Shown here piece by piece: positions 20,761 through 64,000 of a stretch of DNA of 64,000 nt. Positions within the stretch are counted from its first letter, which is position 1. Every line of letters starts with the position of its first letter. The translations under genes were made by a program, and so were the position numbers. A model generated the notes under the pieces. It ran no database searches, was not told the DNA's origin, and saw only the letters and a list, made by a program, of their open reading frames with translations. The stretch is from Carpediemonas membranifera BICM (taxonomy: Eukaryota; Protista; Fornicata), in assembly GCA_019828565.1 (NCBI GenBank), contig JAHDYR010000064.1, positions 558,001 to 622,000 of the forward strand. Reading direction: 5' to 3'.

Positions 20761-23565
20761 TTATCTGACAATTGCGGGGAACCGCACGGTGAGCACGGTT
20801 CCCTCGCCCAGGGCAGACCGGAGCTCAATAGCCCCGCCATGGCAGTCAACGATACCCTTGACAGCAGCCATCCCGAGCCCCCGGGCGCCGGGCAGTTTTG
20901 TGCTGAAGAAGGGGTCGAACACATGCTGCCGGACCGCCTCCCCCATGCCGCAGCCCGTGTCCGCCACCGCCATATACACCCAGTGCATGCCGCAATGGCC
21001 CGTGGATATGGTGAGGGATCCCGGGCTGGTCCCGATGGCTTCGACGGCGTTGGCCACGATGTTGGACAGCACCTGCTGGAGCTGCGACGGGTCGCCCTTG
21101 ACTGCGGGGAGGGTGCTCTCCCGCGACAGCTTCCAGTTGACGGTGACGTTGGGGGGGAGGCTGGCCTGGATGATGTCCGCCATCGCACGGGCCATGGCCG
21201 TGAGGTTGATAGGGACTACCGCAAACTGGCCCTTCCCGGAGTACGCCAGCAGCTCCTGGGTGAAGCGGCTTGCCCTCGACGCCGCGCCAACGATCGAATC
21301 GAGCAGCACGCGCACGGGGTCTCCCGGGGCGAGCATCTCGAGGGCCATGTCCGCGTCGCCCATCATCACAGCTGTCAGGTTCCCGAAGTCATGCGACACA
21401 CCTGCAGCCAGGACCCCGAGGCTCTCGAGCTTCTGGGCGCGGTACAGCTGCGCCTGGGCGTCGGACTTTCGCTGCTGCGCCTCGATGATCTCGCTGATGT
21501 CGTTGATGAAGCCCGCAGTCCGGCACATCCCGTTTGTGTGCCGCACCTCCACGCGCTGGGACTGGATGTGGCAAACCCTTCCGCCGTCCAGGAGCAGCCG
21601 GTACCGTCTAAGGCCGCTGTCCCGGGCGAACATGGAGCGGGCTGTGTCCCTGTCCTCGGGGTGGACCAGGTCCCACCACTCGTCCGACCCCCGCCGGTAG
21701 AGGGCCTCGCGGGTCCTGCCGGTCAGGGTCTCATAGTGCTTGTTGATGTACAGCACCCTGAAGTGGGGCTGGCCCGCCATCTGGTCCATCAGGTAGTAGA
21801 TGGTCGTCATGTTGTCGCTGATCAGGTCGAAGTGCCGCATACTGGTCGCCAGCCGCTGCTGTGTCTCAACCAGGTCGGACACGTCGACGAAGCTGCCGAC
21901 CAGCCCCGCCGCCGCGCCCCGCAGTGACACCGTCGGCTTGGCCCGGACGAGAATATGCTTGACCCCGCCGGCCACGTGGGCCGCGAACATGAATTCGAGC
22001 CGGGCCGACGCGGGTTCAGTAGTGCACTGATGGAGGAAGGAGAGGACCGTCGCCAGTATCACGGGGAAGTCCTGCTCTGCCACGTACTCCTGCAGCAGGC
22101 CAGGGTGGTACTGGATGGTCTCGGGCGCCATGCTGAAGAGGTCGGATGTCGCGTGCGAGATGAAGCGGAGCGGTTTCCAGGCCGGCATGTCACCGCCAAA
22201 CATGACCTCGTTCACGTTCGGGGGAAAGTCGGCGATGAAGAAGACGTCCGCCACCGTCCCCGACATGTGCTCGAACATGCGGTTTGTCTGTCGGAGACGG
22301 TGTCGGGCGGCCACGAGCTCCGTCACGTCCGTCCCGATGATGACTGCCAGTGAGGGGCGGCCCGCGGAGTCCCGGACAAGTGTGCCCTTCGTTGTCATGT
22401 GGAACAGCTGGCCCGTCACCATGTTCCGGAAGCGGTGCTCGATGTTAAACTGCGGCAACTGGCCCTGGAAGAAGAGCCGGAGACGCCGCACAAACCAGTC
22501 CGCCTCGTCCGGGACTAGGAAGCCCCGGCAGAACTCGATCGCTCCAGCCTTGAATGTCGTCGGGGGGCAGCCCGTAAACCGCTCCCAGCCTTTGTTGACA
22601 AACAGCACGCGATACGACCCGCGGCTGACGTCAGCCAGCCACACAACGGTGTCCGAGCACCGCTCAAGCATGCTGTAGCTCAGCTGGAGGCCCTGGGAGA
22701 TCTCCTCGGCGGCGATCATGGCCGAGACGTCCTCGAGGGTGCCGAGGGCATGCCCCCCGCCGGTCCCGTCGACCTTCATTGCCCTCCCTCGTATCCAGCG
22801 GTCGGACCCACCGCACATTACTCGGACTGTGACGTCGATCTCGTCGCTGCGCCCCTGGACGAAGTTCAAGAAGGACTCGGCAGCCCGACCCCTATGCGCC
22901 GGGACGATGGGGCCGAGCCAGGCGGACGGGCCGGTGTAATGTGTCCAGCTCGGTAGACACCACCACTCCTCGATCTTGCGGCTGACGAAGAGGGGCAGGA
23001 TCCCTCTACGGTACTGCGGGCCCACCAACCCGACCCAGAAGCCCTCCTTGGCGAACATGTTCATGCAATTCAACAGGTTCACGTCCCCCAGCGGATCCAC
23101 CTGTCCCACGTCGTTCTCCGGTGGATCTGCCTCGACCCCGATGATGACTGCATGGGCCAGACGCCCCCTCCTATACCGGGCGGCCGACACCCAGTGGACC
23201 GTGTGCGGCCGGCCGTCCACGGTGCGCTGGTCCGAGAAGGCGGCGAACGGATGCTCCGACGAGATGGCGTCCAGGAAGTGAGCTGGAACGGCGGGTCCGT
23301 ACAGCCGTCGGAAGGCTGGGTTGCTCTCCACAATCGTACCGCCCGTGGTGTACTGACACAGCACCACGTTGGAGGAACGAAGACTCGTCCGGATCATGTC
23401 CTCATCGCGTTTTAAAGCGTTAACATGGCTCGTTAAGGCTTTGATCTCCTGTTCTATCTCCGCTAACTCGGCAAGAACCTGCTCGGGTGTACTTGCGACC
23501 TCAGTCCGAGGTTTGAACGAACAATACTGCCCAGAAGGGAAACTTGTCTTCGTGCTATGTCTCAT
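20761..23565 (-). CDS. Multi-PAS sensor histidine kinase (HisKA + HATPase_c), bacterial type, no receiver domain
   Basis: QKLESLGVLAAGVSHDFGNL H-box, NIVANAVEA N-box, DTGCGM G1, FDPFFSTK F-box, GLGM G2; PAS motif VHPEDR. Confidence 0.93.
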   Translation of the reverse strand: MRHSTKTSFPSGQYCSFKPRTEVASTPEQVLAELAEIEQEIKALTSHVNALKRDEDMIRTSLRSSNVVLCQYTTGGTIVESNPAFRRLYGPAVPAHFLDAISSEHPFAAFSDQRTVDGRPHTVHWVSAARYRRGRLAHAVIIGVEADPPENDVGQVDPLGDVNLLNCMNMFAKEGFWVGLVGPQYRRGILPLFVSRKIEEWWCLPSWTHYTGPSAWLGPIVPAHRGRAAESFLNFVQGRSDEIDVTVRVMCGGSDRWIRGRAMKVDGTGGGHALGTLEDVSAMIAAEEISQGLQLSYSMLERCSDTVVWLADVSRGSYRVLFVNKGWERFTGCPPTTFKAGAIEFCRGFLVPDEADWFVRRLRLFFQGQLPQFNIEHRFRNMVTGQLFHMTTKGTLVRDSAGRPSLAVIIGTDVTELVAARHRLRQTNRMFEHMSGTVADVFFIADFPPNVNEVMFGGDMPAWKPLRFISHATSDLFSMAPETIQYHPGLLQEYVAEQDFPVILATVLSFLHQCTTEPASARLEFMFAAHVAGGVKHILVRAKPTVSLRGAAAGLVGSFVDVSDLVETQQRLATSMRHFDLISDNMTTIYYLMDQMAGQPHFRVLYINKHYETLTGRTREALYRRGSDEWWDLVHPEDRDTARSMFARDSGLRRYRLLLDGGRVCHIQSQRVEVRHTNGMCRTAGFINDISEIIEAQQRKSDAQAQLYRAQKLESLGVLAAGVSHDFGNLTAVMMGDADMALEMLAPGDPVRVLLDSIVGAASRASRFTQELLAYSGKGQFAVVPINLTAMARAMADIIQASLPPNVTVNWKLSRESTLPAVKGDPSQLQQVLSNIVANAVEAIGTSPGSLTISTGHCGMHWVYMAVADTGCGMGEAVRQHVFDPFFSTKLPGARGLGMAAVKGIVDCHGGAIELRSALGEGTVLTVRFPAIVR

Positions 23566-23818: not shown

Positions 23819-23905
23819 TTGACCTTGACCTTTACCTTGATCGCCAGTGTTGCGCAGCATAAACATTGTTCAGGGCCTGAAAGGAACGATCAAAGTGACC
23901 AAACT
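23819..23905 (-). ncRNA. Putative omegaRNA scaffold / right end of the Fanzor element
   Basis: CUUUGAUCG pairs with CGAUCAAGG, enclosing hairpins UUCAG-GCC-CUGAA and UGUU-N10-AACA; ends GGUCAAGGUCAA. Confidence 0.5.
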
Positions 23906-23913
23906 GTACAATA

Positions 23914-24470
23914 TCATCCGTCAGCAGACGAATGGTGGCGGTTAGCCAATTGATGATACTGGAATGATGTTGGAAGGCGCGGGATCGATGTGCGACTGAA
24001 CGGAGAGCCACTGAGCTCATCTTCCGTGGCAAGAGAACGCCACAGGATGTTCTCTGCAGCACTCTTGTCCCGATGTTCAACATTCAGAGCATCAGGAACT
24101 GTTGCGCGCCACTGAGCACCACGGCACTGTGGTTTTTCGCAGAGCATCACACGATGTGGGTGAACGTGCTGGTCATCACGCGGACGAACTCGCTTGTAGG
24201 GGGCGTGGTAGTGAGGGCAGACGACGGTGGTGCGGTCCTCGTTAACCATGTTAAGATCGACGACAATGTTATTCCTCTTGAGAAGGGGAACTATCTCTCT
24301 CGCGAACTTTCGATATGACGCGCAAGGAATGAACATACCAGCAGGCTTGGTGAATCCCGAGCTCCCGTAGAAGACTTTCAGGCGAATGGGGGTGGCGATG
24401 GGATGGTGATGAGACGACGTGTGAGCGATTGTGATGTTTGCAGCTGTGCTGACGTCCACGAAGAAGACGC
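23914..24470 (-). pseudogene. Fanzor/TnpB C-terminal fragment (RuvC-II, zinc finger, RuvC-III)
   Basis: KVFYGSSGF...VNEDRTTVVCPHY...RVMLCEKPQC...HRDKSAAENIL fits VxExxTxxxCxxC..CxxxxC..RDxxAAxNI; one Zn Cys mutated to Tyr. Confidence 0.85.
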
Positions 24471-24471
24471 G

Positions 24472-24978
24472 TTAAGCTCCATCATGGAGGAGCGGACGCA
24501 CCCGTTCTAATTCAGCACGAGGACGGGTCAGGTACCCGGGTGACGCGCGCGAGAGCCAGACCCGGGTGGATGTGGAGTACTCGCCCAAACAGCTCTGAAA
24601 TGGCGCTGCAATTCCAACGTAGGCTTCCCTGAAGTCCCGGACGAGTGGGGTTATGTCAGGGTCCCCCCACATCGCCAGGTCGCCAATCCACCTGCACCGA
24701 TCCGCTGCCTTTGCCTTCGACACCTTTTGCTGAGCAATGCTGACGATCTGCGCGAGGACCTCCTGGTCGAACAGGTTGACCGTCCTCGGTGGGGTCAACG
24801 CGTGCGCAGATGCAGAGACGCACGCAAGCAGGCAAGTGAATGTGTACTTAGCCTGCGTGAAAGAACGCATGCCGGGTTCAAGATTTCCTCGCCGCGGCGC
24901 GTTGTTATCGCCTCCACCGTTAATCTCGCCAATGGCCTTGTTAACGGAAGCCTTCACCGTGTATATCTTGGAAGGCAT
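24472..24978 (-). pseudogene. Probable Fanzor N-terminal (WED/REC) fragment, truncated
   Basis: MPSKIYTVKASVNK start and helical 'FQSCLGEYSTSTRVWLSRASPGYLTR' segment, same strand, directly upstream of the RuvC fragment; no RuvC-I DPG motif between them. Confidence 0.5.
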
Positions 24979-25336
24979 CGGAGTCTATTGAGCTGCCTGC
25001 ATCGATCATTTCTTTTCAGGGTTCATCAGCTGGCAGCATCCCTCAAAACACAAGAAACCAGCATCATACAACACAAAGCGTCTTTACTACTAGCTACAAC
25101 CGCTTTCCACCACCCAGAACCGTCGCTCTTACCATCGCCGACGCCCTCATGTCCGCTACCCTTCTGGTGTACGACAGGGGGGCCGTCAGACTGAACCTGT
25201 TCAGTCCTCTGGAGTTCATCCCAGGGGGGTCGACAGCTTAAGTCACCTTTACATGAATCCTCCACATAAAGCCTCTAAATACCACGCCAGTTGTGCACTA
25301 ACCTGCACCGCAGCTCCCTCGATCCCCAGCACGGCG

Positions 25337-26326
25337 ATGGAGCTCAACATGGACAGCAACAGTGATATGTTTCCGAAAATAGCGGATACGACGAAGCGGA
25401 ATCATGCTTCCGTTGAGAAAGACCGAGATGATCATTTGGATGATCTGCAGCTTGAATACAAGCGCTATAACGGCCCTGTGCTACCGTCAGGAATCAGTGA
25501 CAGTGTCAAGTCGGAACGACTGATGGCACACGTCATCATTCTTGAGAAAGAGATCGATGAGCTTCGGCGACAGAACCGATTCCTCCAGATCCAGCGCATG
25601 ACGCGGCCCGAACCCACCATAGAGTGCACGCCCGTCATCAACACCACTGTAGCTGCTACCCAGACGGAGCCACTGGCCACACCTGTTGCGACGGTCCAGC
25701 CAGGCGTTGATGCAGGCCTGAAGATGAAGAAAATGAAGACCAAGCGCGCCAAGATGGTCATGCTGTTCGACCCGGTCAACCCGGACGTGCTGCCTACCGC
25801 GGCAGACCTACAACCGCTTGACCTGGACAAGCTGTGGCCCGACAAGACGGACGTCACGAGGAAGGCGTATGTCCGGTTGACGAACATGTTCTCACTGTTC
25901 ATGTACGACCGCTACTGGCCGGACCTCGGGGCCGAGGACATCCAGATGCGGTTCGCCCGTGTGCGGCAGATGCTCTGTACCGACATGGCCACCAGCGCGA
26001 GCTGCATCAACGCCTACATCGATGACCGAATGATGAATCAGCGCATTCACAAGTCCACCATCCGCCAGGAGCGCGCCATCCTGCTGATGATGTGCCACGC
26101 GCTGACAGGGGACAACCGCAGCTACCGCGAGCTCATCGCCCGCGTGCCCTTCTCTGAAGACGAGCTTGTCGGCGTCAACCCCCGGACCCGTGCCCCTAAG
26201 CTCGCCCCCGCTGCCCCACCGGGACAGGTGGACGATGCCGCCGTCATCACCGCTGAGGGACCTGTGCCGGCCCCCGTGGACGACGGGTTGCTGCCCCCGC
26301 CCGTGGCTGCGGCCGTGACGCAGTGA
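25337..26326 (+). CDS. Hypothetical protein: coiled coil plus possible integrase core-binding (SAM-like) domain
   Basis: TRKAYVRLTNMFSLFM...INAYIDDR...KSTIRQERAIL pattern; start could be 25253. Confidence 0.6.
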   Translation: MELNMDSNSDMFPKIADTTKRNHASVEKDRDDHLDDLQLEYKRYNGPVLPSGISDSVKSERLMAHVIILEKEIDELRRQNRFLQIQRMTRPEPTIECTPVINTTVAATQTEPLATPVATVQPGVDAGLKMKKMKTKRAKMVMLFDPVNPDVLPTAADLQPLDLDKLWPDKTDVTRKAYVRLTNMFSLFMYDRYWPDLGAEDIQMRFARVRQMLCTDMATSASCINAYIDDRMMNQRIHKSTIRQERAILLMMCHALTGDNRSYRELIARVPFSEDELVGVNPRTRAPKLAPAAPPGQVDDAAVITAEGPVPAPVDDGLLPPPVAAAVTQ

Positions 26327-28698: not shown

Positions 28699-29219
28699 AC
28701 CCGTATCCCGACGGACACCCGCAAGGCCCTCTTAGCCACATTATAAACATCGTTATGGCGTGTGCGCAGACCTGTGCTCAGCTGCGGCCTTGTATGATTG
28801 TATGACGTGGAAATCTCAATTGATCTCGATTGCAACCACACGATGCTGCAAATGATGTGGCGTATATTTTACATTGTTCGTGTCACAAATACGTGCGATG
28901 ATTAGAACGCACCAATGCTATCGATCTGAACAGTCGGATCGACGGTATCCGCAGCAGCGACGGGGTCACCGATGCTGTTGCTTCCAAAGAATGAGGCTGC
29001 CTATATAAAATGATATTTGAGAACAGAAGCGCACTGTATGGCTTCTGGATAAGAAACAAACCTTTGATATGATTGCTCCCATGATAATTGAACGAATTGA
29101 AGAATTGAAGGTTAAACTGCGCGCAGTTTATGAACATCTACCTGTAGCGTTTAGAGGTGTTTACTGGGGGTTTTAGACTCAACAATTCTAATCCTGTGCG
29201 GCACATTACCATGTACCAC

Positions 29220-30101: not shown

Positions 30102-31013
30102 CTAAGAGACGATGTCGTCTGCCATCCGGGTCATGATCAGCTTGTACGCCGCCCGGAACTCCGCCTCCTTCTTGTTACGGCCCAGGGCAGACGCCCTCAG
30201 CACCTCGCGACTGGCCGGGTTCGAGACCTTGACGGTGCTGTTGAACCGGGGCGCGTGGTCCGGGATGCCCTCGCCCATCTTGCGGCGGGTTTCGTAGAGA
30301 GGCAGGTTGAGTCCGTTTTTCTGCGTGTACTCGTTGAGGACGCCTTTGTAGTTCATGCCAGGCTGGAACGCGGGGCAGTTCCTTGGAACGCCCCGTGTGA
30401 TCTCCTCCGCCAGCTGGGCGTTAAACACGCTCTCAGCATCAGACAGTGACGATTGGTCAACCGCCTCCCGCTTGCAGGGCAGGTCGGCCGGCGGGGGTCG
30501 GAAGCCCGGGACCGGCAGCTCGGGCCGCTCGCACGGTGGAACCTGTGAGTGGCTGGGAGATGTAGTCTGGCCAGGCGAGAGCGTCTGGATCAGACCGCTC
30601 TCGTGCAGTCGGCCGATCGCGGTGAGCAGGCCGGCCATATGACCATTGGCTAGCTTCACGTTAAAGTAGAAGAGCCTGAAGAACTTGTCCTGCAGTCGTC
30701 TGACAGACAGTGGCAGCATCCCAGGTCCCTTCAGGGCATGGTAGAGGGTGATCATATGGCCCATCGCATGGGGGCATGAGCTGGCGCACGAGTGCCGGGA
30801 CACGAAGCCTTCAACCTCAGAATGCCCCCCTTCCGTCGCGTACATCGCTAACGCCGCGTTAAGCAGATACTTGCCTGTTTCATTCGCGGAAATGCAGTCT
30901 GCGGCAAATACAAGCTGAACTGTCCCCTGATCCCACTCTTGTTGGAAAAACTGGGTCAATTCAGCTTGTATTTGCCGAAACTCTGCATCGTTGCGCTCGC
31001 TGCCCGCGGACAT
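30102..31013 (-). CDS. Protein with C-terminal dsRNA-binding domain
   Basis: NYKGVLNEYTQK..LPLY..PDHAPRFNSTVKV..GRNKKEAEFRAA. Confidence 0.88.
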   Translation of the reverse strand: MSAGSERNDAEFRQIQAELTQFFQQEWDQGTVQLVFAADCISANETGKYLLNAALAMYATEGGHSEVEGFVSRHSCASSCPHAMGHMITLYHALKGPGMLPLSVRRLQDKFFRLFYFNVKLANGHMAGLLTAIGRLHESGLIQTLSPGQTTSPSHSQVPPCERPELPVPGFRPPPADLPCKREAVDQSSLSDAESVFNAQLAEEITRGVPRNCPAFQPGMNYKGVLNEYTQKNGLNLPLYETRRKMGEGIPDHAPRFNSTVKVSNPASREVLRASALGRNKKEAEFRAAYKLIMTRMADDIVS

Positions 31014-63313: not shown

Positions 63314-63379
63314 TTGCTGGCTGATTATGTTGTATCTTCTTGTGAGCGCCACGCAGGATACGACAACGCCGCAAATAGC

Positions 63380-64000
63380 TGTGTTTATACTGCGCAACAC
63401 TGCCCTGTCTCCCTCCTACTCACGTCTTAAGTCGGTAGGGAGATCGTCTTCTCCAGGGCTTCCACAAAGCGTCTTCTTCGTGGACGTCAGTCCAGCTGCA
63501 AACATCACAATCGCTCACACGTCGTCTCATCGCCACCCCCATTCGCCTGAAAGTCTTCTACGGGAGCTCGGGATTCACCAAGCCTGCTGGTATGTTCATT
63601 CCTTGCGCGCCATATCGAAAGTTCGCGAGAGAGATAGTACCCCTTCTCAAGAGGTATAACATTGTCGTCGATCATAACATGGTTAACGAGGATCGCACCA
63701 CCGTCGTCTGCCCTCACTGCCACGCCCCCTACAAGCGAGTTCGTCCGCGTGATGACCAGCACGTTCACCCACATCGTGTGATGCTCTGCGAAAAAACCAC
63801 AGTGCCGTGGTGCTCAGTGGCGCGCAACAGTTCCTGATGCTCTGAATGTTGAACATCGGGACAAGAGTGCTGCAGAGAACATCCTGTGGCGTTCTCTTGC
63901 CACGGAAGATGAGCTCAGTGGCTCTCCGTTCAGTCGCACATCGATCCCACGCCTTCCAACATCATTCCAGTATCATCAATTGGCTAACCGCCACCATTCG
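63380..64000 (+). mobile_element. Fanzor/TnpB-like element, copy 2 (frameshifted, runs off window)
   Basis: 63469-64000 nearly identical to the reverse complement of 23929-24470; intact CPHC; 11-nt and 1-nt indels; structured leader 63380-63460. Confidence 0.8.

Follow-up and report, generated by a model that had tools for sequence, protein, structure and literature searches.

In the genome of the free-living protist Carpediemonas membranifera, positions 23848–25285 of the window, by which we mean the whole 64,000-nucleotide stretch of DNA analysed, hold what sequence comparison identifies as a dead hybrid of two families of Fanzor-carrying elements, A and B (Table 1). An initial annotation had placed a Fanzor/TnpB-like element at 23819–24978; the locus was right and the limits were wrong, as the unit runs between two CTGGC pentamers. 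The four motifs on which that annotation relied do lie in a single minus-strand frame (23914–24459, without a start of its own), and the 168-aa ORF said to precede it exists at 24472–24978. The two had been read together as a single, internally deleted Fanzor, a reading that we reject: the 168-aa ORF is 89% identical to residues 1–168 of a 635-aa family A ORF (locus L058, contig C18), whereas the C-terminal peptide matches family B at 93% identity and family A at only 43%. Genome searches divided the locus in the same way, 24481–25113 and 25110–25285 matching one set of loci and 23848–24408 and 24409–24473 another. From these two sets of blocks with different partners, together with the 89% and 93% matches, it follows that the locus is an A/B hybrid.

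Table 1. Parts of the hybrid unit and related copies, in window positions
Feature	Position	Strand	Basis
Target-site motif TGCAGGTTAGT (family pattern YGCASKWTAWG), probably a host core-promoter element	25297..25307	-	sequence
Left copy of the 5-bp target duplication, CTGGC	25286..25290	-	
Family A left tip GTGGTATTTAGAGG, usual first T absent	25271..25285	-	
3'-terminal fragment (C-terminal codons and 3' UTR) of an RT+RLE non-LTR retrotransposon, antisense to Fanzor, within the A left end	25110..25270	+	
Family A body: partial 5' UTR and Fanzor A codons 1-165 (ORF 24472-24978)	24481..25113	-	
A-to-B fusion junction, about 8-10 bases unlike either parent	24474..24480	-	
Family B 5' untranslated piece	24409..24473	-	
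C-terminal 164 codons of family B Fanzor: RuvC-II alternative Glu, zinc finger (one Cys to Tyr), RuvC-III RD; RuvC-I absent	23914..24408	-	
Putative omegaRNA scaffold and right terminal repeat, ending CTGCGCAACA; terminal stem with 12-nt deletion	23848..23965	-	
Right copy of the 5-bp target duplication, CTGGC	23843..23847	-	
Second family B deletion copy, extending beyond the window end	63381..64000	+	
Family A solo terminal-repeat unit, 63 bp	29143..29205	+	

Both halves of the hybrid are deletion types present at other loci. Upstream in the A body, a deletion junction with 4 nt of microhomology is common to the window copy and locus L002, and takes out the internal direct repeat and the purine tract; in the B half, the deletion that links the 5' piece to the 3' block recurs in three copies on contig C63 (L016, L023, L029). 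The retrotransposon fragment within the A end has a 95% match at C63:583107–583238. The simplest origin, and one towards which we lean slightly, is that an A element inserted ahead of a B copy already occupying the site, and that a deletion with a short non-templated junction then fused the two; template switching before insertion is the alternative. A joint bridging A and B was sought in the read data (contigs of run X1) and none was found; since none of the joints in these reads spans the junction, it is known from the assembly alone. RuvC-I has been lost from the window copy, as first noted, by deletion of GFDPG. The zinc finger described with an ambiguous (Y/C) position is present, its second ligand being Tyr here (CPHY) and Cys in other copies. 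Since RuvC-I is missing, Tyr replaces one zinc ligand and the right end has lost 12 nt, this copy cannot make a nuclease. Two further copies lie in the window. The B copy at the window end, whose C-terminal part occupies 63466–64000 (+), has lost its left tip and has a 12-bp duplication, with its right junction at the usual position relative to a motif at 63352, while the solo A unit lies 10 bp from a motif at 29122 and is flanked by a near-perfect 5-bp duplication.

The initial annotation supposed that an intact parent exists elsewhere in the genome, and one was found at L058:6664–8568 (−), with 635 aa and a complete DPG/E/D triad. In this parent the triad reads D385 (in GFDPG), E540, zinc finger and D598 (RD597), with E540 six residues before CPYC547 and a second zinc pair of the form CxxxxC. 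GFDPG is present in families A, B and a third family, C, and the DPG, the Glu six residues before CxxC and the RD are kept at published spacing in these three families, which are about 45–50% identical (for A and B, in the nuclease half). An alternative Glu six residues before the zinc finger and 120–160 aa past DPG is found in 21 ORFs of the fetched loci; the DPG plus alternative-Glu fingerprint occurs in under 1% of TnpB-family proteins (PMC10711439). The motif D-x(125,275)-[TS][TS]-xx-C4-x(5,50)-RD of Bao and Jurka (PMC3627910) is matched when the second Cys pair is allowed to be 2–4 residues apart, and the strict CxxC/x(4,8)D tail of the Yoon pattern (PMC10711439) is absent from the L058 parent. 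The TnpB/Fanzor-type C-terminus first proposed is thus real in its motifs, and of Fanzor type.

Profile and structure comparisons, which the initial annotation had put forward as a check, gave a divided answer. The best Pfam match was PF07282 (Cas12f1-like_TNB), with E=0.02 in 6 of 14 members, below the cut-off, and nothing significant was returned by Pfam and NCBIfam profiles; a PDB sequence search and plasmid tblastn gave no matches, nor did Pfam and PDB sequence searches with the window peptides. Language-model similarity was strong, the top ESM Atlas matches being Cas12f1-like_TNB clusters at 0.97 for both the 635-aa parent and the window peptide, with the latter matching eukaryotic and giant-virus clusters. 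AlphaFold models (pLDDT 37 and 32) were too poor for fold searching, and fold searches gave nothing informative. Homologue searches among 1.8 billion representatives returned host proteins and no outside relative. This lack of significant HMM matches outside the host, and of a fold match, is what an unrelated zinc-ribbon protein with chance motifs would give. We consider such a protein very improbable, since three diverged families retain DPG, Glu and RD at published spacing, the Atlas score is 0.97, and the right ends are omegaRNA-like. We are accordingly highly confident that the protein is a Fanzor, and its intact members are very likely to act as RNA-guided nucleases. Size and the VxYG motif lean towards Fanzor1 over Fanzor2, and no recombinase (the IS607 serine partner of Fanzor2) was seen in any copy. 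A literature search found no paper joining Carpediemonas and Fanzor, in agreement with the earlier statement that no characterised Fanzor is known from such a host. In the public annotation, the family A protein is labelled 'cytosine deaminase' and the B and C proteins 'transposase' (P0001), which look like mis-annotations.

Although the right ends of the two families have little sequence in common, the fold predicted for each consists of a pair of short hairpins and a long terminal stem, as has been reported for Fanzor1 RNAs. Fold scores for this three-stem arrangement were z=−4.5 for B and z=−1.6 to −4.0 for A; no covariation was detected within families, the copies being too young to show any. 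The right repeat corresponds to the 3' arm of the predicted terminal stem. It is highly probable that the right end is the omegaRNA, that the flank supplies the guide and that the protein is RNA-guided. In run X1, the B 3' part of the window (23909–24413) has a summed contig depth of about 40,000–79,000, compared with 7–60 on flanking genes, a depth that is summed over copies; the run looks like RNA, as intergenic cover is absent, but this assignment is a guess. The depth hints at strong transcription of family B as a whole.

The families are young and numerous. As the initial annotation proposed, they were recently mobile: there are 48–59 DNA matches at 93–98%, and exact terminal motifs number 223 for B and 193 for A genome-wide, against none in reversed controls. 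One full unit holds up to two terminal motifs, so these counts correspond to about 100 or more units per family. The average difference among copies is 2.0% in B and 4.0% in A, figures that refer to the best-scoring copies and understate the true spread. Most copies are deleted or frameshifted, and an uninterrupted full-length frame was present at one A locus (L058) among about 27 examined. An intact A element measures about 2.4–2.6 kb and carries one 635-aa ORF and a 3' end with a predicted RNA structure. Family C, whose protein starts MTSIYTVKF, is represented by L036:13-1995 and by P0013, P0014 and P0021; a C/B hybrid with a crossover near RuvC-I is also present. Tandem arrays with units of 2.08 kb and about 1.67 kb include, besides flanking DNA, fragments of Fanzor A or of the LINE (L079; G000:C8:148108-156685).

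The carrier of these genes has an unusual anatomy. Units of both families have at each end a repeat of about 41 bp, in direct orientation, starting with TGT and ending with ACA, so that the combination of direct repeats, TG...CA ends and a TSD of 4–6 bp known from non-autonomous LTR retroelements is present. A pyrimidine run follows the left repeat; its complement is a purine tract that directly adjoins TGT, antisense to Fanzor and of the same style as the tracts of resident gypsy elements. The window copy and L002 lack this tract. Solo repeats, each flanked by a TSD of its own, are found in the window (29143–29205) and at L024, L074, L075 and L083. No TGG-type primer-binding site was seen by eye after the 5' LTR, and one resident gypsy family is likewise without such a site. 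In both families the left repeat departs from the right one in a consistent way over the first 10–18 nt, where the LTRs of a young copy should be identical. In one longer B left tip (L051:1300-1496), the tip runs into a two-copy sequence whose reverse strand reads, by eye, like a WD40 C-terminus, suggesting that the B left tip came from a host gene.

One explanation of the tips is that a DDE DNA transposase, for example an integrase-derived, Ginger-like one, recognises TGT...ACA, with Fanzor serving in restorative homing. The TGT/ACA ends, the fixed TSD, clustering of copies on the same contig and internal deletions resembling gap repair all agree with this, and established Fanzor1 carriers are all DNA transposons (PMC3627910; PMC13565253). 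Nevertheless we judge it unlikely. Inverted repeats do not extend beyond the 4 bp of TGT(G)/(C)ACA, and direct repeats, purine tract and solo repeats are left unexplained; the insertion point has no conserved adjoining TAM; and no ORF for such a transposase occurs in the fetched copies, so that of the full-length parent and neighbouring transposase that were to be looked for, the DPG-bearing parent alone was found. Because the characters of a TIR transposon were not found, and because one defining LTR character, identical repeats, is likewise missing, we have not filed the carrier as an LTR retrotransposon. No described kind of carrier for these nucleases could be found that corresponds to it; it is LTR-like and promoter-targeted.

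At least 73 A copies have their left repeat interrupted by an RT+RLE non-LTR fragment of variable length, anchored at the LINE 3' end and with a fixed joint. This A 'leader' was considered as a gypsy U3 and rejected, the sequence being a LINE 3' fragment. In CRE/R2-like RLE elements, the corresponding region comprises a CCHC motif, a PD-(D/E)xK end and a 3' UTR; the left-end insert is such a piece, 5'-truncated. Conceivably, therefore, an RLE-type non-LTR retrotransposon nicks the target and reverse-transcribes, synthesis starting on a LINE-containing template and jumping to the Fanzor RNA. The 3'-anchored, variably shortened fragments at a fixed joint are in keeping with this, intact-looking relatives of 1391 and 1505 aa exist in the genome, and Chlamydomonas Fanzor elements with one precise end provide a precedent (PMC3627910). 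We find it quite improbable all the same: the only near-full-length copy ends natively in a TAAA-repeat tail, without the TGTGGTA tip and away from the motif (one copy), so that the Fanzor units do not sit at the LINE's native 3' end, and family B has the same targeting without any LINE piece. On this route the TG/CA ends would be a coincidence. Here the LINE piece appears as a passenger; the near-full-length copy has a different 3' end and site. A second RLE non-LTR family (1391–1505 aa, RVT_1; L086-L089) inserts at ATAAA, including sites inside a gypsy LTR and a Fanzor A tip.

Insertion sites are sharply defined. Left ends lie downstream of YGCASKWTAWG by 10 bp (most A-type) or 11 bp (B-type), in a single orientation throughout; sites were chosen by requiring the motif within 20 bp, so the result is the sharp offset and not the presence of the motif. 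Genome-wide, the motif followed by TGT at 10–11 bp occurs 155 times, compared with 10 times for the reversed pattern. Of the ends, TSD and TAM that were to be derived from aligned copies, the ends and a 5-bp TSD (exact at 14 loci) could be defined, with the motif 5–6 bp outside the TSD, whereas no conserved TAM adjoins the insertion point. Terminal repeats carry the same motif 5–7 nt from their end, and at four loci new copies are stacked at occupied sites. Within 60 nt of the motif, the opposite strand has a start-like long ORF at 11 of 27 sites, whereas the frequency in a matched control was 17% (p=0.004). This test supersedes two earlier ones, the first non-significant and the second made with a biased control; given the enrichment, the motif is probably a host promoter element. 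At the hybrid itself, a host ATG lies on the opposite strand at 25337, 30 bp from the motif. Other multicopy repeats in which the motif is followed by TGT at 10–11 bp were noticed on G000:C1, C6, C11, C13 and C18, several of them near contig ends.

Such geometry could also arise if the Fanzor RNP itself bound the motif, reading it either as a TAM together with the seed or as a TAM with a spacer, and made a staggered cut 13–18 nt past YGCA, where the element would be copied in through synthesis-dependent repair or alternative end joining by the host. In favour, each family has its own offset (A 10, B 11), the putative omegaRNA end on the right remains exact where the left end is damaged (L029 and the window copy), microhomology deletions and local clustering are common, a transposase is absent from all copies, and the host lacks NHEJ and retains a-EJ and HR (PMC8516963). 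Self-guiding from the right flanks was sought and rejected, with a seed-like start able to guide to the motif in none of 45. Solo repeats without a full omegaRNA have the same geometry, and TG/CA ends combined with an exact 5-bp TSD are seen more typically with integrases. We regard siting by Fanzor as rather unlikely.

We tentatively propose instead that movement occurs in trans, the elements behaving as miniature LTR-like units with Fanzor in reverse orientation. The reverse transcriptase and integrase of resident Ty3/gypsy elements would reverse-transcribe and integrate them, and a host factor would steer the integrase to promoters. The route fits in that TG/CA ends, a 5-bp TSD, a purine tract and solo repeats are all present. 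Resident gypsy LTRs measure 53–87 bp and start with TG after a purine tract, with a 5-bp TSD in at least one family; at least 93 integrase matches occur in the genome, many in long open frames; and one gypsy LTR has an end similar to the A tip (TAAACCTCT...ATACCACA). Several observations speak against it. The two repeats consistently differ, though LTR replication should equalise them, two loci (the window copy and L002) have a junction without the purine tract, and nearest relatives lie on the same contig above chance (9 of 30 for B, 1.3 expected; 5 of 27 for A, 0.7 expected), which DNA-level copying fits better. The census of gypsy flanks covered 40 LTR ends of the best candidate helper, a family with a 53-bp LTR whose LTR end and purine tract are most A-like, and about 20 others: none of the 40 had the motif 8–14 bp downstream, leaving this family unsupported as a helper through a shared target, and the others gave one possible motif case. 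No LTR start already seen was found behind the motif among the first 100 motif sites listed. An apparent gypsy-to-Fanzor template-switch recombinant (L057) was rejected, as it consists of a complete gypsy element inserted into a B copy, with CTCGG duplicated; L059, L078 and L085 are probably nested in the same way. Taken whole, including promoter steering and the carrier mechanism, mobilisation by gypsy in trans is a possibility to which we give slightly less than even weight. The wider statement, that these are promoter-targeted retroelement chassis with the omegaRNA end as a terminal repeat or that Fanzor itself sites insertion without a transposase, seems to us modestly probable. The gypsy complement comprises about 14 chromovirus-like families with unusually tiny LTRs (53–87 bp) and many long open frames (L059-L073, L092-L098); several of these LTRs hold the same promoter-like motif in either orientation, and one family's LTR ends in CCAAA, not CA.

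Among known systems, Fanzor1 (Bao and Jurka, 2013, PMC3627910; Yoon, 2023, PMC10711439; Jiang, 2023, PMC10530073) is the closest in protein and RNA, with a single ORF of about 635 aa, a DPG RuvC-I, an alternative Glu six residues before the zinc finger, an RD RuvC-III, a three-stem right-end RNA (here predicted) and non-autonomous multicopy elements. The Carpediemonas families differ from it in having no outside sequence relative among 1.8 billion representatives, a CxxxxC second zinc pair, a longer spacer to RD, a carrier without TIRs or transposase, no conserved adjoining TAM and a metamonad host. The unclassified Fanzor elements MCi-2 of Mucor and CRe-1/2/3 of Chlamydomonas, partial precedents, share the absence of TIRs, a precise 3' end, variable 5' parts, internal deletions and a target-sequence bias; their TSDs, however, are 11–12 bp or a variable 7–19 bp with the motif within or beside the TSD, whereas in Carpediemonas a 5-bp TSD is combined with a motif 5–6 bp outside it and with direct repeats (PMC3627910). 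DNA-transposon associations predominate among Fanzors (PMC10530073), and no retrotransposon encoding Fanzor is known (PMC13565253).

The carrier itself invites comparison with two groups of LTR elements. Short TG...CA repeats, a purine tract, a 5-bp TSD, solo repeats and insertion at a fixed distance near a host-factor site characterise non-autonomous TRIM/SMART/LARD elements and Ty3/gypsy elements targeted to promoters or tRNA genes, such as Tf1, Ty3 and DGLT-A, and the Carpediemonas elements have the same features. Unlike those elements, they have end repeats that are not identical, no clear primer-binding site and, as cargo, an antisense Fanzor whose putative omegaRNA forms one repeat; a helper with the same target was not found in the sampled flanks.

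If either the retroelement chassis or insertion sited by Fanzor itself is true, OMEGA nucleases would no longer be confined to excising DNA transposons. The triad is kept in three families despite an LTR-like anatomy and no adjoining TAM, a setting that tests further roles for Fanzor; candidate services to the carrier are allelic homing, cutting of rivals at a shared landing site and site choice. They also add a Fanzor clade for which no outside relative was detected, in a host that lacks both ORC and NHEJ, and their target sites offer a candidate core-promoter motif for Carpediemonas. The hybrid in the window is itself dead, and the interest lies in the young, divergent families on an LTR-like carrier.

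Several neighbours of the hybrid deserve mention. About 280 bp from its right end starts an intronless gene for a 934-aa multi-PAS histidine kinase of bacterial type by Pfam (20761–23565, −), a possible lateral transfer. Just past the motif, on the other side, lies a host ORF (25337–26326, +), covered in run X1, with a weak match to a phage-integrase SAM-like domain (E=0.065). Farther along, near the start of a dsRNA-binding-motif gene, a 25-bp inverted repeat with a 26-nt spacer occupies 30902–30977.
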